NCBI GenBank assembly: GCA_001643675.2
Contig: LSRY02000016.1
Coordinates: 744,001 to 808,000 of the forward strand
Reading direction: 5' to 3'
DNA: 64,000 nt
Origin: Monocercomonoides exilis PA203
Taxonomy: Eukaryota; Protista; Preaxostyla
Below are positions 28,403 to 63,856 of the stretch, in pieces (position 1 is the stretch's first letter; each line of letters begins with the position of its first letter). A program made the translations under genes and the position numbers. The notes below the pieces were generated by a model. The model was given only the letters and a program-made list of their open reading frames with translations. It did no database searches and was not told the origin of the DNA.

Positions 28403-28738
28403 GATAAAAAATATATCAAAAAGAATGAACTGATCAGTTCCATTAATTAAAATGAAAATTATGTGATTGAATACCAACATTTTCACAATTGTGAATGATT
28501 CAATCTTTTTCAAATTTTCGAGATTTTTTTGAATATTTATTTTTCGTTTTATATTTTATGCAAACTTTTTGGAAATGAGATGATAATTCAAAATTAGGTC
28601 AAATGAATATTTATTTATCAATAATAAAAGTTTAGCCTCTGCGACACAAAAAATTCTCTGTCAATTTGTTGGTATAGATGGAAGGCCTTTGTCGAGAAAT
28701 AATTGGATATCCAATTTGCCAATTTTTTGATACGAAGT

Positions 28739-28994
28739 GGGTGATTATTTTTGAAATCATATTTTTTCATTCAAAAATTTCTGTGCAAAAATATTTCTAG
28801 AATATCAATAAAAAAAAGTGAAAAGTGAAAAGGCTTATTGAATGCATTTTAATCTTTGATTCTTAAAAAAACATTTGTTTTTAAAAACAATTATCAAACT
28901 TTTTCTCTTTTGAATAAAAAATTTCTAACAAAAAACAAACAATCTTTGAAAATCAACACCCCGAAAAAAGATATGATTTCAAAAATAATCACCC
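28739..28994. mobile_element. Small GGG...CCC MITE nested in the hAT MITE
   Basis: GGGTGATTATTTTTGAAATCATAT ... ATATGATTTCAAAAATAATCACCC|AT, perfect 24-bp TIRs. The terminus resembles those at 1146 and 38728. Confidence 0.75.
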
Positions 28995-29067
28995 ATATTG
29001 ATAGTTTTTTTTGCGAAACGTGAACAAAAATGTATTTATTTCTTGAAAACAAAACAAAACTATAATA

Positions 29068-29166
<99 letters not shown>

Positions 29167-29167
29167 A
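29068..29167. repeat. (TAAA)25 microsatellite
   Basis: Perfect tetranucleotide array inside the hAT MITE. Confidence 0.97.
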
Positions 29168-29619
29168 CTTGATAGAATTGTCTGTCGACTTGCCAAAAGG
29201 AACAAAAAATGAAGGTCTGTCACAGAGGCTTAAATAAAAGTTAGTCAAAGAAGGTTAGCGGGAACAAAACGCACTGTTGAAAAAAGTTTTCATTTTGAAA
29301 TATTCTAAATAAAGTTTCAATAATACGTTATTATGAAACTATTTATATGGTGAATGAATAGATTAAAAAGTGTTTGAGAAAAAAAAACTGAAATTTTTGA
29401 CATAGGTCTAAATTGAACCAGTTGCGAATTTCACTGTCTTTAATAAAATTTTACAATATTATTGATTGTTATAATTTATAATCTCTGTATTATCTCAAAA
29501 ATTCAAAAAACAATAGTATAAAATTTTTAAATATTAAATTCAAAAATTTTGATCGATAACCCACAATAAATTATAAAATTTCGAAATTTGAATTAATAAA
29601 ATAATTTGAAGACACTTTG

Positions 29620-37975: not shown

Positions 37976-38150
37976 ACACATTTATTTTCCACATTTGCCA
38001 AGAACTTAACAATGTCACAAATGTTTGATCGAAGATCTAATATTGTTGGGACCATTTGGCTGTTCTAGACATATCGAAAATAAATGTAAGTCTTTGCGAC
38101 AATTATATTTTTTGTGTTTTGTGTCGGTCGAAATATCAACTTTTGTCGAG

Positions 38151-38190
<40 letters not shown>

Positions 38191-38727
38191 CGCAAATGAA
38201 CAAAGAGTAAAATAACAGTGAATTAAATTTATCTATTTTTGGTTTTATTGTTTCTATAAAAACTTTTCGAAAATTTTCATAACAATATTATTATTAATAA
38301 ATTGATCATGTTGATATGGGATTGATCAATGTTGTTTTTTATTTCAACTATGACCTATCAATTAACAGATGTTGTTAACCGCAGTTCTCACTTATATTTG
38401 AAAGAAGTTTCAGCCATCATAGTTTGTTTTTTGTTAAATGGAGAAGTTATTTTTTAACAAATCCTTGTTTATTATTGTATCTATTTTTTGTATCATTTTG
38501 GTTTTGTCATTATTAATGTTGTTTTCAACTTTCATTATTTCTATTGATTTCAAACTATAAAAGGTGAAATTTCTGATTTGATTTACACTTGTCAACAATG
38601 AGAAAAAAATTGAAGAATCAAAGTTGATTGATTTATTTCGCAAGCTCAACTTTCCTCACGTTCTTATGATGTTATATTGAAGGAAAAAATACAGAAAAGA
38701 GCGATTGAAGAAATTTAATGGATAAAT

Positions 38728-38967
38728 GGGTAATTATTTTTGAAAAGTCGCAAATGTTTAATTTTCATAAAAATCAAAAATTTCATATCTTGATCAAATT
38801 TCGGTTCCCGCTCATGTTACTTCACAGGAATGTGTTAAATATTATTGTCAAATTATATCCTCCGCTTTGGTAAAGTTACATGAGCGGGAACCGAAATTTG
38901 ATCAAGATATGAAATTTTTGATTTTTATGAAAATTAAACATTTGCGACTTTTCAAAAATTATTACCC
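38728..38967. mobile_element. Palindromic MITE of the GGGT...TTTTTGAAAAG family
   Basis: Near-perfect arms of about 95 bp and a spacer of about 50 bp. The terminus GGGTAATTATTTTTGAAAAG and internal TTGATCA...CGGTTCCC resemble the 1146/7679 ends. Confidence 0.85.
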
Positions 38968-38999
38968 AAATAATCATTTCATGAATTTAATAATAGAAA

Positions 39000-40010
39000 T
39001 TGTTTGTGTTATTGTTCATTATCATATTTTTGTCATAATGAAATCGATTCATCTTTAAGATTTTAAAAGAGAAATGGAAAAAAGAAGAGCGTCGAAGGAA
39101 ATTGAAAAGCATTTGTTTTTTAAAATGAATAATTTTTGGATTAAATGAAAGTTATTTCCGATTTTTCTGATAGCTTGTTGGCAAAGAGCAGAAATTCAGA
39201 AGTCAAAATTTTCACGATTTAGATAATATTTCAAGCTGGTTGCATGAAAAAGCAGAAGAAAAATGAAATAATGAAATGGTGTGACTTGATTATTTTTCTC
39301 CAAGTGTCTTCTTCATTTTTCTTAATTCAAAACAAATTTTAATTTCTATCAAGAATAAATATTATCAATTGTTTCATTAAAAAGCCTAGTCAATGTTGTG
39401 CCTTTTTTAATTGAACAAGCTGGTTGTTCATTCGAGTTATTTGCAACATTCTCTTCCGGATTTAGAACATTTCAAAAGATATGGAAATGAGGTCACACAA
39501 AAAGCAAAAAGTTACAGATGAACAGATCATGATCTGAATGATTTTAAGAACGCTTCACTCGTTTGATCAGAAAATGGAATGGCCAAAGCTCAACAATTTG
39601 GATTTTCGCACAATTTTCTTTTCAGAAAATGGTTATACGCATTTTCAAGCATTCTTGTTGTTCTTTGGACTGGGATTTATCATCGATCTCTTCATTGACA
39701 ATTGTTTTTTTTTCCTCCGATATCTTACTGATGAGCGAGAGATTCACAGATTCGCCAACTCCTTATATCAGCGTTTGAGGAGGATGATGATTTCAAAAAG
39801 GAGTGTTTGATGTGGAAGGCACACGAGCTGCTGATCAACAAGAAGATGTGTGCAAAGAAGGAGTCAGTTGTGTTCCTGATTGGGATGATGCTGTGGGAGG
39901 GCCTGACTCTTTAAGCACCGTTTGGGGAGCATGAGGTGAACCTGATGGAGATAAAGATTACTACAAGAAAAAGGCAGAAAATATCAGAAACTTGTCTGAA
40001 GCTTTTTTAG
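39000..40010 (+). pseudogene. Relic of the cytoplasmic pseudokinase part of the beta-helix receptor family
   Basis: SAFEEDDDFKKECLMWKAHELLINKKMCAKKESVVFLIGMMLWEGLTL*APFGEHE aligns with LAFEDEDEFQKECLRWKAPELQINMKMGATKESVAFSIGMMLWECLTLNIPFGEFE of the 2731-aa protein. LHSFDQKMEWPKLNNL aligns with LHSFEDEEDELPSLTNL. Confidence 0.88.
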
Positions 40011-40952
40011 GTCGTTTGCAGATTTGAGATGGTGTGGTTATTTTAAAATAATGCAAAATGTTAAATGAGTTTTGTCATTTTTTAACTGCAATTAAGATAA
40101 TATTTCAACATTATCTTGCTTTCTTATTTATTTGATAATTAATTAATTAATTAATATAAAAAACAATACTCACTTCACATAAACATAATATATCTTGTGA
40201 ATTATCTTTTTAAGTGAGAGTTATCGAATAATAGAGATAAATTTCATTATTTCTTTTGAACTTATCTATATTCAATATTTTTTATTTGTTATTTCCAATA
40301 AAAATCTTTATTTAATTGCATTCACATATAAAAACAATTATTTCACAAATGTTGATTCTATAATAAACCATTGAAGCATTATTTCAAAGTTGAATCCACT
40401 TGAACTATTAAACTGGATGAACAAAAGGGTCTTTTGTTGCAAACAAACTATCTTTTGATTGGCGATATGAAAAAATACAATTACTCAGAAAATATTAGAT
40501 GAATTGTAATTAAAATCAGTTATGAAAATCGCTTTTCATTCTGAAGAATGAAAAACGTCCGAACACAATATAAAAGTTCAACAAACGTTGTTTAATGGAT
40601 TTCAGTGTATAACAAGCATCTGAAAACGGAGTTGATAAATAAATTAATGAGAGCAAACATATTTACACACTGAAATAAAGTTTTTGATTGGAAGTTTGAA
40701 AGAATATTTAACATTCCTCGTATTTGTAACTCACAATTCCACTTATTCACAATAAGATTCTTCTTTAAATGACAAATATCGAAAGTTTGTGTCAAAAACA
40801 GTTCAGAAAAATAATAATTGCAAACTTTGTTAAACAAACCTCATTGTTTGGCAAGAAATTTCATATGAATTCAAATATATTCAAAATTCTTCACTGAAAT
40901 GAAAAAAGATAGCTATAGCAGTCGAATGTTTTATTTTCAAAAATATAGACAT

Positions 40953-43936
40953 CTACAATAAAAGCAATGCGTTGAGCGTTTCTGGTGCAAGCGAGTACCT
41001 TCTATCTCCAACAATTCGTCTCAGGCCAGAGAAAATTCTTTCACAAGATGCTTCGCTGCACGGAAACATCGTCAACGAATAACAAATGTTTGCAAAAATT
41101 GTGGATATTGTTCCTTGCTTTGAAATTTCAGAATAGAAAATTTGAGTATTAGTATGTTCCACGTTTTGAGTATAATCCAGTAACATTGATGAAAATAAAG
41201 CTCTAATGCTCTCAATTTGACTAGAATCTTTCAAACAAGAAATTTTGGATAAATAATCATTGAATGCTGACTTCAATCGAAGAAACCAGTCCATGCAAAT
41301 AGATTGTTGGATTTTTGAAAGTGCTTTCTTTATGTGTTCTGTTGTCTTCGTGCAGTCTGTAATAATAAATTCATTCACACCGAGTTCTTCAACATCATTA
41401 TCATCTTTTGAAATGCTTTTTTCATTTTCTGAACATTCATCTTCTTTTTTTTGTTTGAATTTAATTGTGAATCACTTTCTTCGATATGTGAGTGTTTATT
41501 TCTTGTTTCATAAATTGATAATTCATGTTTGCTTCGTTCACAAATGTTTGATCCTTCCTCATATTCATCATCCGCCGAATCGTTTTCTGCTTGAATAATG
41601 CCTGTTTCATCAAAATCAATTTCATCAAAAATATTATCTTCATTAGTAATAACTTCTTTTTCGATAAGTGTGTTTTCTTTCAAAAGAGCTAATAAATGGA
41701 GCAAACTGTTATTTGGTGAGTTGGTTGGTGAAGTTGATGATATAGAGTGCAAATCTTTTGGAGGCGGCTGAAGTTGAACTTGCGTTTCGGTAATTGCTTC
41801 TGCTATTCTGTCTTTTTCTGGGCATATATACTGTAGAGCAGAATAAAAAGTCTCAACTGATAATGGAGAAGAGAATATTGTGTGAGGAAAATTTGTTGGA
41901 AAATTAATTCTTTCATTCTTCGAAAAAAATGAAAGCGCATATTGTTTGTCTGTAAAAAATACATTTTCGCTGGTTTTATCTTCCATTACATGAGAAAGTG
42001 TTCGTAACTTTTTCTGTTGACTCTTTGAAGATGCAGTATTTGGAACTTTAGAAGGACAAAGAAAGACCGAGTCACTTGGAATTATATCTTTTGTGGATTG
42101 AATAGATGAATCGCAACGCATCCTTTGAATTTAAGTTTGATCCAAATCCTTTGAAAACACTGATGAACATTTTATTAACATGCATTTTTCTTTCTATATC
42201 ACAAACTCTGTTGAATAAGACTTTGAAAACAAACCGTTTCTATAGTCAAGAATACCAAGTGGAGTTAAGGAATGAGCCAAAGAAATTTGATCTCCTCGTT
42301 CTTTCCCTAAAAATGAATTGAACAGTTGGATTGCAATAAAGCAAACTCCATATTGCCAATCGGGGGAAGAATATTCCTCAAGATCTTGTAACCACATGTA
42401 TTGCGCAATTGATTTAAGGATAATTGGAAACACATCTCCAAGCTTTGTGTCGTCTTTTTCAAAGAACAATTGCAGTTGTTTCAGAGGTATTAGTAATAAT
42501 TCACATCGGATCACGTCATCTATTTTGACTTTGCAGAAATAGTCTGTAAATGAGATATTGTGTATATTTTTTGTAATAAAAAAACAGATTTCAAAAAGAC
42601 ATATCCATCTTGTTTCAATGAATGAAGGGCATTTCGGAAAAAATGGATTTTTTGTGGACTCGTTTCTGGAAATTTTAGAAAATGACGTTATTTCTTCCTT
42701 TAATTGAACGAAAAATGAATTATCCTTAAATAGGCGTGCGACAATTAAATTAATCAAATGGTTGCAGCAGTAAACAAATAGAGGAGAAATTTTTTTCCGT
42801 GTTTCTATGATTGAGGTCGACTTTGTTTGATCTGTAAAGCTTTGAATTGCAAGTTTTTGTGGCAGCAAGCCATCCGCGCAAAAGCAGCAAACCTCTCCTT
42901 TCAAATCGGCTATTTCTGAAATAATTTCATTTGCAATATGAAAATAATCGGAAGTTGGAAAGCAAGCCTTTTCAATTTTCCAGAAAATTGGAGATGCCTT
43001 TGTCTGCAACGGAACAATAGTGATGACAGTGTATTTTTTTCCTGCTACAACACCTCCATCCACAATGACGCCAACCATTGAATTATAAATCTTTGTATTT
43101 CAATTGGCAATTCATTTCTCACCTTCTTCATAAATAAGTGCTGTTAGCTTACGATATGTGAGAGTAGGAAATATGGTTGTCGGTGAAAGAGTTGGATTTT
43201 GTTGGGAAGTGATAATTAAAGAAGAAATAAATTTGTTGAATTCATTGGAGAAAGCAGAAAGAAACGCAATATTGCAATGACCAATTAAATGCAAAAAATG
43301 TTCAATTAATGAATCAAATTGAAAATGAGTTGGAACTATTTTCTTTGAAGGAACTTCAGAAAATCTTGTTGAAGATGGATGAAACTTGAAATATGGCAAA
43401 ATCGAAGATGTAGTCGTCAATGCGCATCGATGATTCACAACTTTATCGCATCCTTTTCGTCCGGAAATGGCACAATTTATACCGTGTTTACTGTTTGGAC
43501 ACAAGAAATAAATGTGTCCATCTTTTTTTAATGATCCATCCATCTTGACAGGAGTATATGCCAACCAAAGCTTTCCATCGAAAGTTTCAAAGTGAATTTT
43601 ACCAATTTCTTCTCCAGTATTGTTTGGGTGCTTGTAGACTTGTTTTAAGCAGAAAAATGCAAATTAATCTTTGTGATAATTAATTTGAAACATACAATTT
43701 CCACCATTGAAAGATTTTGTTCTTATTAATTCCACGAATGTGCATTCATTGTTTTTTAATTCCTCAACTTTTCTTTCAAACGCTTCAAGCTGCAAAGATG
43801 AATAATATTTAAAAAAATAAATAATTATGCACGCTGTGATAAAATAAGATTGCCAAACAATATTTTTCGCTGACAAGCATCGTTGTAATTCCAATGGCAA
43901 TTCTTTTATTAAATCATTTTTCGTCATTTCACTCAT
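40953..43936 (-). pseudogene. hAT transposase pseudogene (intron-containing, with stops and frameshifts)
   Basis: VIVDGG (first D), FCADG (second D), CCNHLINL (CxxH), ETRW, and the dimerisation domain PCSEASCERIFSGLRRIVGDRRYSL. Two in-frame TGA near 43100-43114 and further disruptions near 42190 and 41377. Confidence 0.9.
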
Positions 43937-44399
43937 TATTCAAATGATCTCGACAAACCGACTGATCTCAACAGACAGACTGATCTAGACATGATCAAGT
44001 CGAAAAGATCTGTCGATTTGACAACAAAAAAATTCTTTTTGCATTTTCATGTTTTATTATTCATTTTTATAATTCTCAAAATAAATTGAGAAAAAAAAAT
44101 ATTAGAAATTAAATGTTATCCAATTTTTAAAATTTTTCTAATGGAAAAGTCTTAAAAGTGTTTTTAACGTCCATGTCGGTCGGATTGTCGTTTCCGTTTG
44201 ACAAAGTCAGTATGTCGCAAAGGCTTGCCTGAGCTATTCTTCACTCTGTCGAGCCTGCCAATAAACATTGAATTTAAAAAAAAATATCATTAAAATTATT
44301 CAACTTTCATTGTTTTTCTTTTCAATTAGTTAAAATCTGTTTTCAATCTCTTTTTTCACATTCTTCCGAATTTTCCTTTTTTCACAATATAAATATCAT

Positions 44400-55180: not shown

Positions 55181-56790
55181 TTATGCAAATGGATTAAATC
55201 CTCCCGCACCACTTGGCTTTCCCAGATCTTTGAAAGGATCAACTGCCTGAGTGGTTGGAGCAGCGCCGTGGGCATACGGCGAAGGTGCAGCAGCTCCAGT
55301 CGATGAAGGTGCTCCCCACGGGTTAGCTGCTCCGCCAGCGCCAGCGCCAGCTCCTCCAGCACTCGCAGGATTGCCCCAAGGGTTAGCAGGGCCAGGCCCT
55401 CCTGCAGGTTGGGCAGCTCCCCACGGATTTGGTGCAGGAGCAGGATAACCTGCAGGTCCTGGAGTGGGCCCTCCCCATGGATTCGATGCTGCAGCGGGAG
55501 GAGCACCCCACGGGTTTGCGGCAGCTCCTGGGGCCTGTGCTTGTGGACCCCAAGGATTGCCTGGCTGAGGAGCCTGCGATGCAGCTGGTCCTCCCCACGG
55601 GTTGCTTGGTCCAGTTGGAGCTGGTGCCCCCCACGGATTGGCTGCACCTGCAGCAGGACCAGGAGCGCCCCACGGGTTTGCAGCGGGTGCAGGAGCAGGA
55701 GGAGCACCCCAAGGAGCAGCTTGGGCAGGTGGATAAGACGAAGGTGCACCCCATCCTCCTGGTCCTCCCATACCACCATATGGATTTTGTGGGTTTGAAG
55801 GGTACGGAGCGGGTGCCCCAAATCCTGGTTGCCCCATTGGTGCAGTAGATGCCCCAGGACCGCTGAAGAGTTTTAGGATGTCAGAACTATCAGTTTCTGT
55901 TTTTGTGGTTTCTTCAATCAGAGGAGGTGCCGAGGGTTGTGAATGATGTGTTGGTTGCGTAGGAGCTGAAGAAGATGGTGTTGAAGTTCCAAAAAATCCT
56001 TCATTGAATGCAGTCGGAGCTGAATTTTGCACTTGAGTTGTTTGTGTTGTGCTTGGAACAGACCCTGTAGCTTGTGCACCAAAGTTAAAAAAACTTGGGG
56101 CATCGTTAGATGCTGAAGGAGCCTGAGCAGTTGAAGCAGCTTTTTGAGTTGGTGGAGGAATTGATGGCGATTTTGGTGCTTTAATATCTGGAGTGCGAGA
56201 TGGTTTTGGTCCAGGTGAAGTTGTTGCTCTTGGTACTGGTGTTGGATCCTTTCTACCACTTCCTGACGGTTTTTGAGCGTCTAGCGGACGAAACCATCTT
56301 TTTTCGTTATATTTCAATTTCATGAACCTTTCAACTTTCGGGCGATCTTGTCCATCTGGTTTTTCAAAGGCAGATGGAGTCCATGTCGCCAGCCAGACCT
56401 TTGCTGCACCCTAAAGAATATTTCAACAAGTATTGAACTCTACCATCTTTAATCAAATATGTTATACCTCGTTTCCAATAGATCTAATTTTTTCAACTTC
56501 TTCATCAGTAAAGTCTCCCATTCCAATTCCTTTCACCTTTCGGTTTTGCGATCTATGTGTTCCAGCGCAATTTTGGCAAACAAAAGTTCCCAACTCCAAA
56601 CATATGTACATTGGCCTCTGCAATGATGCAATCATATTGAAGATAATAAAGAAAAATGAATTAAATGATTTTTAAGAACGAATGAAAAGACCTTCTCTGT
56701 GCAATCGAAGCACGTTCTATTTGCTTCAAGCTTCATAAGTTCTCTAACCGCCTTTTCATTTAATTCAGCTTGCTTTGCTTTTAGACTCAT
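55181..56790 (-). CDS. ArfGAP, AGFG (Hrb/RIP)-like, with a Pro/Gly/Ala-rich tail carrying nine NPW motifs plus DPF and terminal NPF
   Basis: Spliced: MSLKAKQAELNEKAVRELMKLEANRTCFDCTEK-RPMYICLELGTFVCQNCAGTHR...IGNE-GAAKVWLA...FMKLKYNEKRWF. The CxxC-x16-CxxC-x4-R ArfGAP zinc finger is present; two introns. Confidence 0.93.
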
Positions 56791-56941
56791 TGCAATCCCA
56801 CAGCAAACCAAAGTGATATGAAATTGTGAAAAATATAATTAGATCAATATGATCAAGAAAATATTTTAATAAATTTGAGAAATTATTGCTTTTATGTTTT
56901 CGTTTTATTTTTTTAAATTGAGCGTTTGAGCTAAAGATAAA

Positions 56942-59900
56942 TAGGCCTTTGCGACAAGCCGACATTTCACGGAGGACCTCGACAAGTCGACCGACAAGAC
57001 AGTCACTAATTTTTGAATTTATATTTTTAAATTTTTAATTGAAAAACTCTTTTTTTTAATTCTATTAATTTTTTTTCAATCAAAATAACAAACGATATTT
57101 GATATTTAACTATTTTTTATATCTATTATTATAATCATACAAAATATCCAAAAATGCTATAAAAATGAGTTATCGACAGATCTTTGAAGAGATCAGTCGA
57201 ACGACAAAGATCAGTCGGTCGAAAGATCAGTCGGTCGTACAGATCAATCTGTCGAATAGATGTGCTTTTTTGAGAACGTTTCTTTTTTTTCAGAAATAGA
57301 CTTTGAAAACAATTTTGTTAAATAAAATCATTCATAACTTGATGAATTGTAAGAGTATTAAACAAATGGAGAGTTTTGTTTGTCTGGCATTTTTGAAACG
57401 TTTGCCAAAAACGGTATATTGCGAAACACTTCGTCAACTTTTATTTATTTTTATGACAATTGATTTTATCCAACAAATGTGATAATAGTATCCATAATTT
57501 TTATTTTCTTTGAATATTGAGAACAAACACGATATTTGAGTTAATAACAGTGTGACATTAGTGAAAGATTAACTGTAGTACGAACTTTTAATTTTTAATA
57601 TAATGAATAGGACTAGAAACTGCTTTTATTTGTCTATGTTTCCACTGAAGAATATTCATTATAATCAGTGATGATTTGGACATTACAATTGTTTTTGTGA
57701 AAAGAAAAGTCACTTGAACAAATATATAATGAAAGCAGCTGCAACATTGTTGAATAATATTGAATTTTGTAATTTTCCGGATGATTTGAAAAGAAAAAGT
57801 TGAAGCTCAAGATTTTGAAAAAGAAAAAAGAATTGACGTTGTGACCGAGGAAGAAAAGTGAAGATTGAATTTTTTTTATAGAGAATTTTATTGAAGAAAT
57901 CATTTGTGAATCATTCTTGACGACTCATTGCTAAATCTTCGAATGGTTTTCAGGAAGAAAGGATATAACTACGGGATGCATATTATATCAGTGAGAGGAC
58001 ACGAAAACAATTTTGTATTATTCCATTCGCACGTGCACAGAAAGGGTTTTCAACATGTGGATGTGAAACCTAATGATATATTGATGCTACACGCGAAAAT
58101 ATATCAGGCTCTGTCTCATTCAGCACAAATTCATAAATTTTCTTCCTCAATTTCTTCTTGCTATTCAGAATCAATCCCAGGATTTTCACAAGTCGTGCTA
58201 TGAACTGAGATCTCACCGTCCGTTTGAAAGCGCGACAAGAATCAGCTGCCTAAATCTCAAAAGAAAATGAGATACAAGGGCCATTTCAAGCATCTCGGTG
58301 CAATTGGTTCATGGAAGCAACACCGAGCAATACGATATTGTGAAAGGCATTCGTCATGGAGATGGAGCAAATAACGTTTGAGCTAGAAACATGGCAGATT
58401 CTGAACAGCAAAAGACTAACAATCAGATGCTGAAGCTTTTTTTTTGGAGGCAAAAATGGCACTGCGGAATAAGCTGAGTTGCAAAGGGAGCAAAAAGGCG
58501 AGTTTTCACTTTGGCGAAGCAGGGAAGTATTTTGAACATATATTTGATCCAGTTTTGAAATCCAAAACCGAAAAGGTGATTGTCTATTTGTTCCATTAAT
58601 ATGATATTTTCAAGACGCTGTTCGAAGAAGTGTATCATTCTCTTCCATCTTAATTGCCAACAGCGAGAGACTCTTTTTCGGGCAGCGATCCGACAAGAGA
58701 ATACAAGCTGCTTCTAAGCGACGTTGCGTCATTCATCGGTTTTTGCTTGGCACCCAACATATAGAGGGACATGACAGCTTTAGCATCGGTTCACCACCTA
58801 TTTCTGAACCAAATCATTGCACAACAGAAGAATCAGAAGCAGATAGAAGGAAAAACTGCTTCTGGATTAATTTATTCTCTTCTTCTTTCCCATTTCGAAT
58901 TAGTTAGCATTCTTTTGAAGATGCTAGTCCAAACAAAGAAAGTTGTAAACGCATGCAAATCATTAAGCAATTACCACGATGAACTGAATAGAAGAGATAC
59001 AATATTTGAACATAGCGTCATCCAACTCTATTGAGAATTATCCTTCAATCTTCACATTGGAAGTGGTTTGGCAAATCAAACGTATAGCAGGCGAAAGAGA
59101 CTGAACGGCCAATGAATTTAAAGATGAAAATAAGATTGTGTAAAGAGCAGAAGAAACATCTTTGCAAATACAGCAAATGCATCTTACACAAGAAAATATT
59201 GAAGACGGAAATTAGACTAAAGTTTTTGGAATAAAAATAGAATTAGAGAAAGGGAGAAAAAGATAGAAAGAAAAGGTTGAAAAGATGAAAAAACTTGAAT
59301 GCAATGAAGAAGCTGAAGAAGAAAGGGAATGCAATCGCAACGTGAAACAAGAAGTTGTATGAGTTACGAACTATCGATCTTCAACCACGAAACAAAAAAG
59401 ACCACCTTGCACCTGTCGCATCTATTGTCAATAAATCCGTCATTAACGAGCTCATCAGAATGACTCCAGCTATGTGATGAATGAGTTGAACGCAGCAGAA
59501 TGAAAGATAGTGTTCAGTTTTTTTCTCTTTCTTCAATTCTCTTCTCTGAGCATATCTCGAGCAGAGCGAGAGAAGATTCAAAAATTATTTTAACAACGAT
59601 AAAAAGCACTTCACAAACATCAACACAGAGATCGCCTTTGAGAACACATATCCACTTTCTTGTCCAATGAAAAATACTTATGAAATGATAATTGCGATCA
59701 TCCATTTGAACTTGTAGCTCCTCTTCAGTCGGTTGAAGGCATAAAGAGCACTGAAAGAAAAGATTCCACTGCCTCTCGAATTGAAGATCAGCGTTTCGTT
59801 TCACTCTCCGGAGGGGTTTGTTCCATCCGCAAACTGCATTCCAGACTTGATAATTTCTCAGATGAGCTATAAGGAGGAGTTGAAAAAATAATGGAAACTC

Positions 59901-62051
59901 GTGTTAAACTTGAGAGCAAGCAGAGAGAGAAATATCGGAAGGACGTCTTAACTTTTGGAAAGGTGAAGAATGGCTTGGAGTAATTGCAATAAGCTATTTC
60001 TTTTTCTTCCAAGTGATATTAGTCATCGTTGAACAAACACTCGCACAAACTGAGTCACAAAGTTCATATTCTCTTCACCATATTCCATTTCGCGGGTTAT
60101 TGAAATGATTTTGTCCTCAAAATCAGCACTCCGTCTCCTCCGATAATTCCATCGACAAATTGAGTTGTCGTGCTGCAGAACACATATATCTGCCAGGGGA
60201 AGAAGAGCTTTATGGATTTTTGGAAGAATCTGGAGAAGAAGGTGGATGCGAGGAGAGAGAAAGAAAAAGAACAGTAAAGAAGACGGAAATGGAAATTCAA
60301 GATATTTAAGGGTAGCTGTATGCAGAAGGAGGAGCGGAAGAAGATGAAACAGATGAAGAGAGAGGTAACAAGAACAGCACATGCGATCCATTGCTCAGCG
60401 GAAAAGGTCAAGAACATTCTTCTATTTGAATGGACGAATCAGGCAGAAAGATGATCCATATCGATTCTTCTTGCTCAATAAACAGTATTTTTCCATATTC
60501 CTCTCTTCGACTGTTTCATCATTCTGGACAGTTTCTGATTCACCTTTTCACAGATTCAAATACACATTCAAACACCTTTTGAATAATTTCAGGTTGATCT
60601 TCATAAATTTTTGAGCTATCATCCTCGCTGTTTGCACATGATTCATTTCTTTCATTAGCTCAATCTTCGAAGCAAACAGTGAACAAATAGAACACACTGA
60701 AACAGAAAAATCTGCAGACGAAAAAGGAACAAGAGGCTTCACGACATGCCTCTTCCTGTCTTCCTCTATCTCTAAAAATGCCATATTCACGCACTGAATT
60801 GAAGGCCTCCAAAGATATTGCAAAACTTTTCAGTCACACTTTCAGACAGGCATCAACGCTTGAATGGGAGTGAATTGTTTCTTTTATTTGTTCAATATGC
60901 CTGCCATGAAATAAGAAAGAAGATGTAACCTTACTGAAGAAAGGAATATTTTGAATGTCAAAGAAAGAAGTACCAACAAGATAACCGTTGTTTTCCTTCA
61001 AAAGAGCTTTCAACACTGGTCTTCATCTCATGTTTACAAAAACCCAGTTCTTCGCTTTATCTTCGTTTCAAAGAAAGCTCACATTTCCCATCTTCAAATG
61101 AATCATCGAATCAGATATCTTCCTTTCCATTCACTGTTCAACATTATCTCAAATAATCTTCACTTTTGCTAATTATCCACACAACAAATGGAAATATGAT
61201 GTAATTTGAAGCAGTTGAGCTGCAGAACACAATTCTATTATCCCAATCGAACCGCAGAAGTCCTGCTAGGCTTCTCTCCTTGTCACTCGAATCCCTTTCA
61301 GTTTCACATCTTTTGAAACTTCATTTGTTTCAAGCAGGAACAAATCGTCGAAACAATAACTTCCGTTTGTTGTTTAAACGCTTTTCATGTAACTTATGCA
61401 AATATGGCTGTTTAACCTTCTTCATCTTTTTATAATTTTCAAGGAAATAGTATTATCATCAATCCAACAAAAGCTGCCCAACTTCAGATTTCTTTTATCA
61501 CACATTAATTATGTTTCATTGTTGGAATCTTATTTCAGTTGATTTTCAGTGAAAAAGATAGGTCATTAAACTTTGCTGAAGGTCAAAAAAGACAACATGA
61601 AATGAATAGAAAAGGAATTGCTTTATATGGCTTTATTAAATATATAAAAGCAAACCTATGCAGTATTTGAATGTTATCATAAAATCAGAATATATTTATT
61701 GAATTTGATTTTTGTTTTTGTTTTTGGTTTGACTGTGATTTTAATGTATTATCGTATTAGCAAGCAATGATCATATCTGTGTTTCTTTTTTGAATTTTGA
61801 TAGTAAAAAAAATATTTTGAGGGTATTTCTCTCAAAAAGAAAAGAACCTGATCTTTTGTTCATAAAAAACGTTTTTTAATAATTTGCTAAAGTCAAAATA
61901 AGCGTCTTGATAAGTCAAAAGTGCAAACGGAAACATTCATTGTTAATCCCCAATTCTTAATTATCAAAAAAAAAAAAAAAAAACCACTCGACACAGGTTT
62001 TTTCTTTCGACCGACACGATTCGTCAAAAATTTCCTTGTCGCAAAGGCCTA
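56942..62051. mobile_element. 5.1-kb non-autonomous hAT element with host-like cargo (Pack-type)
   Basis: Perfect 17-bp TIRs TAGGCCTTTGCGACAAG / CTTGTCGCAAAGGCCTA. Exact 8-bp TSD AAGATAAA at 56934-56941 and 62052-62059. Subterminal GATCAGTCG repeats at 57190-57255. No transposase motifs recognised inside. Confidence 0.92.
57900..61400. pseudogene. Decayed coding fragments carried inside the hAT element
   Basis: Higher GC than the AT-rich subterminal arms; fragmented protein-like frames on both strands (57928-58203 +, 58771-59034 +, 60548-61016 -). Confidence 0.45.
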
Positions 62052-62372
62052 AAGATAAATATATGAATGTTGAAACACAAACGAATTATGAAATTTTTAA
62101 AAATTTTGTAACGTATTAAATTTTTATTTTTATTTGTATTTTCCTCAATTGATTTTTTCTTTCTCTAATTCATTGAATAGAAATTATTGAGAAATTGAAT
62201 TTTGTTTACAAATTGAAATATTATAAAAAATTTTCTTGCTGCTTTTTCATTAGATTCAAAAATTTTTATTATCGTTCAATGTCAATTTACAATTTCGAAT
62301 GAAAGTTAAATAGAAATCTTCTCAGAGCAGAGGATGAATATTTTTGAAAATGAATTAAAGCTGAGCATCTCC

Positions 62373-63856
62373 GGTAAGTGGGCAGATAGCGACCGGTAAA
62401 AAGTGAGTGTTTTTCGTTTGTTTTTTCATGGATAAAAAACACAGACAAATGAAGAACATGATTAAACTTTGTTTTTTTGAAAATAAAGTGCAAAAAAAAT
62501 TGATTGAATTCAATGTTTCAAAAAAAATTATTGCTAAGATCAGTTATTTTTCATGAAAATTCTGCATATTCCGATGCAGATTCACCATCGCCAGCTCCAT
62601 ATATGTCACTTTCAGTTGATGAAACAAGATCATCAACTAATGGAGTCAATGATTCGTCTTCACTTTCTGATTCATTTGAATCACTATCATCGCTTTCTTC
62701 TTCTTTTGGTACAGTAAATATAATTTTTTTGACAAAATCAATAGAAGAGTATTTTCGTGAGGAATGGAACATGTAACTTGCAATGTGGACATCAATAAAC
62801 TTATTGTTAACTCCTGTTTTTGGTAAATATTGGCGAAATCTGGACCATAATCCTCCTATTCCGTTCGTGCAGACCCCAGAAAGAGGATTCTTGAAATTAT
62901 ATTTATGGCAAACCGATAAATGTGAATAATTGTATTCTGATAAGCAATTATACGCACGCCATTCGTCACTGTAAATCATTGTCTTGGGTTTTATATTTGC
63001 TTGGATGATGGGAAGCAAGGTGTCTTTTTTTCTATTTTTGACCCTAACAATAAAGAATCTTCCTCCACATTTTTCGCTTTTTCTTTCAATACCTCCGAAA
63101 AGCCATATTTTTGATTTTTTTCGACCCTTGTGGAATTTTCTCCTTCTCAGGATAGCCTCGTCAATTTCTACGATTTCACCATCACCTCCAATTGGTTGAA
63201 AATTCTGAAATGTGATTGTCGAAGAAATTGAACGACATTGAGAATACCAGAAACTGACGGTTTTTCTGTTGATGTCAAGGAGAATACTTGTTTGAGTGAT
63301 ATTCAATTTCAAACAATAATACAAAATGATTCTGAGCAGCTTGTTCAATGGTATTTTCGTGTTAAAGAATGACGTATTTTCAAATAAACTGATCGATTTA
63401 TCGCATTTTGCACATCTGTATTGTTTTCTTGTTTCTGATCTTGAATAAATGTACATTTTATTAAAACATCTCGGGCATTTTTTTTTGACGACGTTCAGCA
63501 CATTCTTGATGAGCCAATCAAATGAACATGAAACACAAGAAAATTTATCATTCAAATCTGCAATATCCTTTCTCGAATCGTTGATACTTGTTGACATTGA
63601 ACAGAAATCAATCAATTAATCATTTATTTAATTTTGTTATATATTATATTCAAATTTAATTGTTAACAATTTGTGCACAAATTTATTATTTTATTAATGG
63701 GAAAATTGAGTTTTTATTGATTTTTATCATTTATTTTCAACAATTAAATATCAAAAAAACTCATTGAACGAAATCATTATATCATATTGTGTTCAAATAT
63801 ATTATTTAATTTGGCAAAATAACAAAAAAATACCGGTCGCTATGTACCCTCTTACC
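62373..63856 (-). mobile_element. Complete Merlin DNA transposon (1484 bp)
   Basis: 26-bp TIRs GGTAAG(T/A)GGG(C/T)A(G/C)ATAGCGACCGGTA. 8-bp TSD GCATCTCC at 62365-62372 and 63857-63864. Confidence 0.95.
62551..63597 (-). CDS. Merlin/ISXO2-like transposase; open frame but catalytic Glu replaced by Gly
   Basis: CPRC...CAKC Zn ribbon, HTH, IVEIDEA, WLFGGIER, YSDEWRAY, SVCHKYNF, TNGIGGLW (family pattern TxxIExxW), acidic tail. Confidence 0.92.
   Translation of the reverse strand: MSTSINDSRKDIADLNDKFSCVSCSFDWLIKNVLNVVKKKCPRCFNKMYIYSRSETRKQYRCAKCDKSISLFENTSFFNTKIPLNKLLRIILYYCLKLNITQTSILLDINRKTVSFWYSQCRSISSTITFQNFQPIGGDGEIVEIDEAILRRRKFHKGRKKSKIWLFGGIERKSEKCGGRFFIVRVKNRKKDTLLPIIQANIKPKTMIYSDEWRAYNCLSEYNYSHLSVCHKYNFKNPLSGVCTNGIGGLWSRFRQYLPKTGVNNKFIDVHIASYMFHSSRKYSSIDFVKKIIFTVPKEEESDDSDSNESESEDESLTPLVDDLVSSTESDIYGAGDGESASEYAEFS

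Follow-up and report, generated by a model that had tools for sequence, protein, structure and literature searches.

Transposons with terminal inverted repeats (TIRs) that carry pieces of host genes are well documented in plants and sparser in animals. In plants, the Pack-TYPE elements comprise Pack-MULE, Pack-CACTA and Pack-hAT (Catoni et al., 2018, PMC6379663; Gisby and Catoni, 2022, PMC8903248). In animals, Pack-TIR elements including Pack-hATs have been described, for example Pack-hAT-N8_XT of Xenopus tropicalis (Tan et al., 2021, PMC8277862). Only about 1.4% of the animal Pack-TIRs are multicopy and the cited example carries 291 bp (PMC8277862). The genome of Monocercomonoides exilis PA203 was reported to contain 4.5% DNA transposons and about 35% unclassified repeat without a fine transposon annotation, and hAT elements are not mentioned (PMC8767320). 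The 5.1-kb element described in the following lies at positions 56942-62051 of a 64,000-nucleotide stretch of this genome (contig 10:744001-808000, referred to as the window) and is very probably one old copy of a multi-copy, non-autonomous Pack-type hAT family with host-gene cargo. The family is a clear multi-copy and recently mobile case of a gene-carrying TIR transposon in a metamonad. A literature search found no description of such elements in oxymonads or other metamonads, in agreement with the original prediction made for this DNA, which knew of none in oxymonads.

Like the animal Pack-hAT (PMC8277862), the element belongs to the non-autonomous hATs, is bounded by TIRs and an 8-bp target site duplication (TSD) and contains duplicated host sequence, and its family occupies several sites with distinct TSDs. 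In contrast to the animal example, the M. exilis family carries approximately 3.4 kb from two genes, one of them putative, in at least 12 copies of several subfamilies; furthermore, the capture is old, with 63–71% nucleotide identity to the parents, and the host is a metamonad protist. The element also resembles the plant Pack-TYPE elements as they have been defined (PMC8903248), namely class II non-autonomous elements with the TIR and TSD typical of their superfamily, gene fragments between the TIRs and a chimeric multi-gene cargo. It differs from these in being borne by a protist and in its heavily decayed cargo. With the Ds-type internally deleted hATs and the hAT MITEs (miniature inverted-repeat transposable elements), it shares the lack of a transposase and a presumed mobilisation in trans through common TIRs and subterminal repeats. 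However, its interior is not a deletion derivative of a transposase gene as in the Ds type, and its length of 5.1 kb greatly exceeds that of a MITE.

All genome searches covered the 82.3-Mb assembly of 101 contigs. The parts of the element are listed below in coordinates of the window; subfamily B is a second subfamily of the same family, and the copy at 38-44 kb is a decayed autonomous hAT in the window.

56934-56941, no strand: left copy of the TSD, AAGATAAA, identical to 62052-62059
56942-56958, plus strand: left TIR, TAGGCCTTTGCGACAAG; its first 15 bases are the TIRs of the hAT transposase copies L037-L039 and L041 elsewhere
56942-57400, plus strand: 5' subterminal region; it contains short repeats, namely CGACA/GTCGA close to the end and AGATCAGTCG repeats at about 57165-57250
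57851-58866, plus strand: decayed PRP4-type kinase exon fragment; parent at contig 58:1470077-1471064
about 58937-61269, plus strand: decayed fragment of a 2987-codon frame; putative parent at contig 32, about 721943-725040, on the minus strand there
61270-61965, no strand: AT-rich interior; parent not found, common to other copies of the family
61966-62051, minus strand: 3' subterminal region with the right TIR (62035-62051); 86–87% identical to subfamily B and 78% to the copy at 38-44 kb
62052-62059, no strand: right copy of the TSD, AAGATAAA, matching the left copy
Expected empty (uninterrupted) site: CTAAAGATAAATATATG

The ends of the element are as the original prediction had described them. 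The TIRs of 17 bp are perfect, TAGGCCTTTGCGACAAG at 56942-56958 (plus strand) having its exact reverse complement at 62035-62051, and the sequence read directly across both junctions gives an exact 8-bp TSD, AAGATAAA, at 56934-56941 and 62052-62059. The left boundary reads ...aagataaa/TAGGCCTTTGCGACAAG... and the right boundary ...CTTGTCGCAAAGGCCTA/aagataaa.... Searching the window for the 17-mer with up to three mismatches yielded three matches against 0.04 expected, a number reached in 0 of 100 shuffles; the third match, at 38087, corresponds to a terminus of the transposase-bearing copy. The same 15 bp, TAGGCCTTTGCGACA, are found exactly as in the element at the four copies L037-L039 and L041, where they adjoin a transposase gene. 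Element positions 1-450 show 70–87% identity to many other elements genome-wide, and the 5' subterminal region resembles the 5' ends of the autonomous copies L050, L051 and L055. With an 8-bp TSD and a TIR common to hAT transposase-bearing copies, the element is a non-autonomous transposon of the hAT type.

The classical terminal consensus of hAT elements is 5'-YARNG. The element ends in TAGGC, with C instead of G as the fifth base, and does not follow this consensus; since the autonomous hATs of the same genome depart from it likewise, the fifth-base C is treated as a trait of the lineage.

Between these ends no open reading frame (ORF) exceeds 129 amino acids, and the G+C content rises from 0.20–0.30 in the flanks to 0.33–0.42 from about 58000 to about 61400. 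The original prediction had seen here about 3.5 kb of old, fragmented coding sequence; approximately 3.4 kb could be traced to two unlinked host loci, one of them putative, with nucleotide identities of 63–71% to the parents. Both tracings use further copies of the family in addition to the element itself.

The first source is a gene for a PRP4-type kinase. A protein-level genome search with a stop-free piece of a subfamily B copy matched contig 58 inside an open frame of 596 codons, and a DNA search led to the same place with 65% identity over 993 nt. The parent locus is spliced: an upstream exon, in which the kinase motifs GKGSFG and VAIK occur, is separated by an intron from a large exon. 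This large exon contains a Pkinase domain (E 2.5e-31) and, when used as the query for relatives, has PRP4 kinases as its best solved relatives (E 1e-47). Using tblastn, element positions 909-1925 (57850-58866, plus strand) align to residues 25-361 of the 596-residue parent frame, with 40% amino acid identity over 343 aligned positions in a single frame (pairwise E 4e-51) and approximately 12 in-frame stops. The kinase motifs HxKGFxHxDVKPxxIL and EHIFDPV are still readable in the element. Neither the upstream exon nor the intron of the parent was found in any copy of the family, which indicates that part of one exon was copied. The kinase fragment is present in all four lineages tested (A, B, C42/C80 and L059), and is least decayed in L059, where it shows 60% amino acid and 71% nucleotide identity to the parent and three stops in 173 codons. 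This presence in all four lineages argues for one capture, which is old.

The second fragment was traced through the subfamily B copy L035, two stop-free pieces of which match one and the same open frame on contig 32, a frame of 2987 codons without stops:

L035 5797-6270: contig 32:722224-722463, minus strand, 50% amino acid identity, E 6e-14
L035 3832-4239: contig 32:724687-725040, minus strand, 40% amino acid identity, E 4e-11

The two match sites lie 2577 nt apart, which equals 859 codons and places both in the same reading frame. At the DNA level, L035 4754-6316 matches contig 32:721943-723587 over about 1.6 kb with 63% identity, and from the window itself 59446-59580 matches contig 32:723741-723878 with 70% identity. 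The extent of the block in the window, about 58937-61269 on the plus strand, was placed by a global alignment of L035 to the window. When a query was taken from the opposite strand of the element, the match fell in this contig-32 region again and contained seven TGA codons in frame, as would be expected if a TCA-rich coding frame is read in antisense. A HMMER search of 1.84 billion protein representatives with one contig-32-derived cargo piece gave no match. The kinase fragment and the contig-32 fragment are adjacent, have the same orientation (plus) and together account for about 3.4 kb, which fits the G+C plateau. The mixed orientation proposed in the original prediction is not supported; both traced fragments lie in tandem on the plus strand of the element. 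Judged by these features, the element counts as Pack-type: no transposase is found between its TIRs, and it holds host gene fragments whose parent copies lie elsewhere, the parent on contig 32 being a putative one.

An interior of this size could also be the decayed transposase, or another transposon gene, of a once-autonomous element. A length of 5.1–5.4 kb is typical for autonomous hATs, the entire interior is common to every subfamily, and about 1.1 kb of it has no assigned source. Nevertheless, tblastn of the 13 intact hAT transposases of the genome (859–1016 amino acids) against eight family members gave a best E of 0.25. A profile hidden Markov model (HMM) of the hAT transposases of the genome, searched against six-frame translations of the element, its relatives and the majority consensus of both subfamilies, gave a best E of 1.5, and the same profile detected every broken control copy with E between 1e-9 and 1e-190. 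A tblastx comparison of the element with the copy at 38-44 kb matched at the termini only. In Pfam searches of 10 ORFs and then of 58 stop-free pieces, the best E was 0.007 among 58 queries, a value expected by chance; Pfam likewise fails to detect the window's decayed kinase pieces. Together with the 3.4 kb traced to the spliced gene of a PRP4-type kinase and to a frame of 2987 codons, these results largely refute a transposase origin of the interior, which is highly unlikely, and the lack of a transposase stated in the original prediction is borne out.

The original prediction had proposed to look for second copies sharing both TIRs and cargo, and such copies were found genome-wide with different TSDs. 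Subfamily A contains three copies, this element, L002 on contig 1 and L003 on contig 48, with about 85% identity over the full length and very few insertions and deletions among them. L002 has both TIRs and the TSD ATAATCAA; L003 is without the first approximately 368 bp. Subfamily B, of 5.4 kb, is collinear with the entire element and comprises at least nine full or near-full-length copies of 84–100% identity, and its copies with complete ends have the TSDs ATTGTGAA, GCATATAT and ATTTATTT. Five copies of the family therefore show five different 8-bp TSDs. Further lineages are C42/C80, with about 70% identity, and L059 on contig 1, in which clear TIRs were not found in the portion examined. 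The copies of the family are 5.1–5.4 kb long; older fragments also exist.

At least 12 copies, differing in their TSDs, carry this cargo with its parts in the same order and joined at the same points, and so the package transposes as a unit. If instead the cargo had entered a small MITE at this one site through separate, later insertions or rearrangements, a possibility raised in the original prediction, cargo, order and junctions would not be shared in this way; this explanation is refuted and its probability is practically nil. The clearest sign of mobility comes from two subfamily B copies, L032 (contig 36:1141273-1146656) and L035 (1152782-1158196), which are more than 99.5% identical and lie about 10 kb apart in opposite orientation, with flanks and TSDs that differ between the two. 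Since these copies are nearly identical at different sites, the 5.4-kb package has transposed very recently, and subfamily B is the recently active lineage.

Some arrangements of single copies were observed in addition. As an inverted pair, L032 and L035 might allow the DNA between them to be inverted or deleted. L005 (contig 42:9127-13170) and L006 (contig 80:1899775-1903784) represent one family copy with identical flanks on two contigs, which is either a segmental duplication or a case of haplotigs that the assembly left uncollapsed. L059 (contig 1:1847444-1850989) and contig 1:1798256-1799566 are two copies of a further lineage about 50 kb apart.

For the copy in the window, a recent move had been read from its pristine ends around old cargo. 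The comparison within the family leads to a different view. Between the element and subfamily B, positions 1-87 show 76–82% identity, positions 223-358, the best-conserved stretch between the subfamilies (86–91%), 86–88%, and the last 86 bp 86–87%, whereas the interior blocks reach 64–69%. The termini are thus constrained across the family (76–88% versus 64–69% in the interior), and this explains the pristine ends without requiring a recent jump. Furthermore, when substitutions are polarised on the three subfamily A copies, 307 of them in approximately 5 kb (6%) are private to this copy. If all of these had occurred after insertion, both TIRs and both TSD copies, 50 bases in total, would have remained unchanged with a probability of about 0.94^50, or 5%; part of the divergence of this copy probably predates its insertion. 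With the nearest relative about 85% identical, the sequence comparison does not demonstrate a recent jump of this copy, which has probably been resident at its site for some time.

The constraint seen at the termini has no counterpart in the coding potential of the interior. A tblastx comparison between the subfamilies showed all six frames to be equally similar, with none favoured. Codon periodicity of the substitutions was not found in subfamily A (minimum p 0.12 over 33 windows), and in subfamily B only one nominal p of 0.009 was obtained among 31 windows, located in the non-coding 5' region. Hence, the interior has evolved without coding constraint throughout the existence of the family. 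Mutation of the element by a process of the repeat-induced point mutation (RIP) or deaminase type was also considered and rejected because of an ordinary substitution spectrum: a bias of this kind was not found, about 50% of the changes being transitions, with many A/T transversions, and the spectrum is neutral-looking.

The interior could still be kept for a function that does not require a protein, for example as a transcribed source of antisense or small RNA directed at the PRP4 kinase or at the contig-32 gene, or as a spacer needed for efficient transposition. Its full length is kept in all subfamilies despite about 35% divergence, very few insertions and deletions separate the subfamily A copies, and plant Pack-type elements are reported to yield small RNAs against their parent genes (10.1101/777037). 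On the other hand, the interior diverges faster than the termini, no conserved block is prominent and no frame is preserved, and a retained function of this kind is unlikely. To the same low degree it is conceivable that the chimeric cargo of a kinase and a giant gene, length-intact through the subfamily splits and still mobilised, is not mere ballast. If so, it could serve the element or the host at the RNA level, for example by small RNA or antisense directed at the spliceosomal PRP4 kinase, or transposition could depend on its length or sequence, and gene-carrying transposons would be an ancient and recurrent feature of oxymonad genome evolution.

The genome offers many candidates for a transposase acting on the family. 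More than 130 hAT transposase matches were found, many with open frames of 900–1000 amino acids. Of the copies with the identical 15-bp TIR, L037-L039 have intact transposase frames of 919–924 amino acids, and L037 carries Dimer_Tnp_hAT (Pfam); the frame of L041 contains two in-frame stops. The copies L050, L051 and L055 have intact frames of 953–1016 amino acids and share the subterminal motif region with the element, with one to two mismatches in the TIR. Near-identical family copies at different sites and the many intact transposase genes suggest that the family is mobilised in trans by a hAT transposase.

The original prediction had described hAT-type subterminal repeats shared with the transposase-bearing copy in the window:

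38087-44227, minus strand: decayed autonomous hAT copy with a broken transposase, mutated TIRs and no TSD seen

At 40953-43564 on the minus strand, its transposase is broken up into four or more ORFs, in which Dimer_Tnp_hAT is found (E 7e-7), and the protein is 89–92% identical to several copies elsewhere, three of which have intact frames of 923–924 amino acids. The ends are mutated (TAAGTC..., CAAGCC...). The proposed subterminal likeness is real, with 81 bp being 78% identical to the 3' end of the element and the TIR at 38087 matching 14 of the 17 bases of the element TIR; however, it is slight and weaker than described.

Further hAT-related observations in the window are a 122-nt inverted repeat pair at 38704-38991, inside the decayed copy at 38087-44227, and a MITE-sized hAT-type relative of about 600 bp at 28631-29232, with the TIRs TTAGCCTCTGCGACA and TAAGCCTCTGTGACA and an apparent 8-bp TSD AATAAAAG.

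The most probable account of this Pack-type hAT family is as follows. The family retains only the cis-acting ends of an autonomous hAT, a TIR of 15–17 bp together with subterminal sequence that extends over about 450 bp at the 5' and about 90 bp at the 3' end. In the place of the transposase gene it carries two coding pieces placed head to tail, about 1 kb of a PRP4-type kinase exon and about 2.3–2.5 kb of the contig-32 frame, a putative host gene. These pieces were most likely copied in once, long ago, via faulty gap repair or template switching after excision. The chimera has since moved as a unit, probably by the trans-acting transposase of autonomous hATs with the same TIR, and the subfamilies have split. 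The cargo has decayed neutrally and encodes nothing. This copy inserted 151 nt upstream of the start codon of an ArfGAP gene, thereby producing the AAGATAAA duplication.

Several points weigh against this interpretation. The contig-32 locus is a putative host gene, judged so by how long its open frame is, and may instead belong to another repeat. For two parts of the interior, 57400-57850 (about 450 bp) and 61270-61965 (about 700 bp), no source was found. The copies with the identical TIR lack subterminal similarity, and those that share the subterminal region differ by one to two TIR mismatches. Finally, the capture mechanism is one that we infer.

A Pack-type family of this kind suggests that part of the unclassified repeat and some of the broken gene-like sequence in M. 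exilis is transduplicated host DNA. For gene prediction in this organism, kinase-like pseudo-exons could be mistaken for genes. Furthermore, the known host range of transposon-mediated gene shuffling is extended to a metamonad protist.

On the left side, the element is followed by the ArfGAP gene:

56788-56790, minus strand: start codon of ArfGAP (ATG at 56790-56788), 151 nt from the element

On the minus strand MSLKAKQAELNEKAVRELMKLEANRTCFDCTEK is read first, followed by an intron and by RPMYICLELGTFVCQNCAG, the rest of the zinc finger. The distance of 151 bp upstream of the ArfGAP start in the original prediction is accurate, and an insertion this close to the ATG should lie in the promoter or the 5' untranslated region of the gene. 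The C-terminal half of ArfGAP (55181-56323, minus strand) is made up of degenerate NPWG(A/G)P repeats in long succession. Long poly-T/poly-A runs occur at 38153 and 48325 of the window. On the right side, 62551-63615 (minus strand) contains an intact ORF of 354 amino acids with an ISXO2-like/IS1595 DDE domain (Pfam DDE_Tnp_IS1595, E 4.6e-18), which represents a Merlin-type transposon 500 bp to the right of the Pack-hAT.

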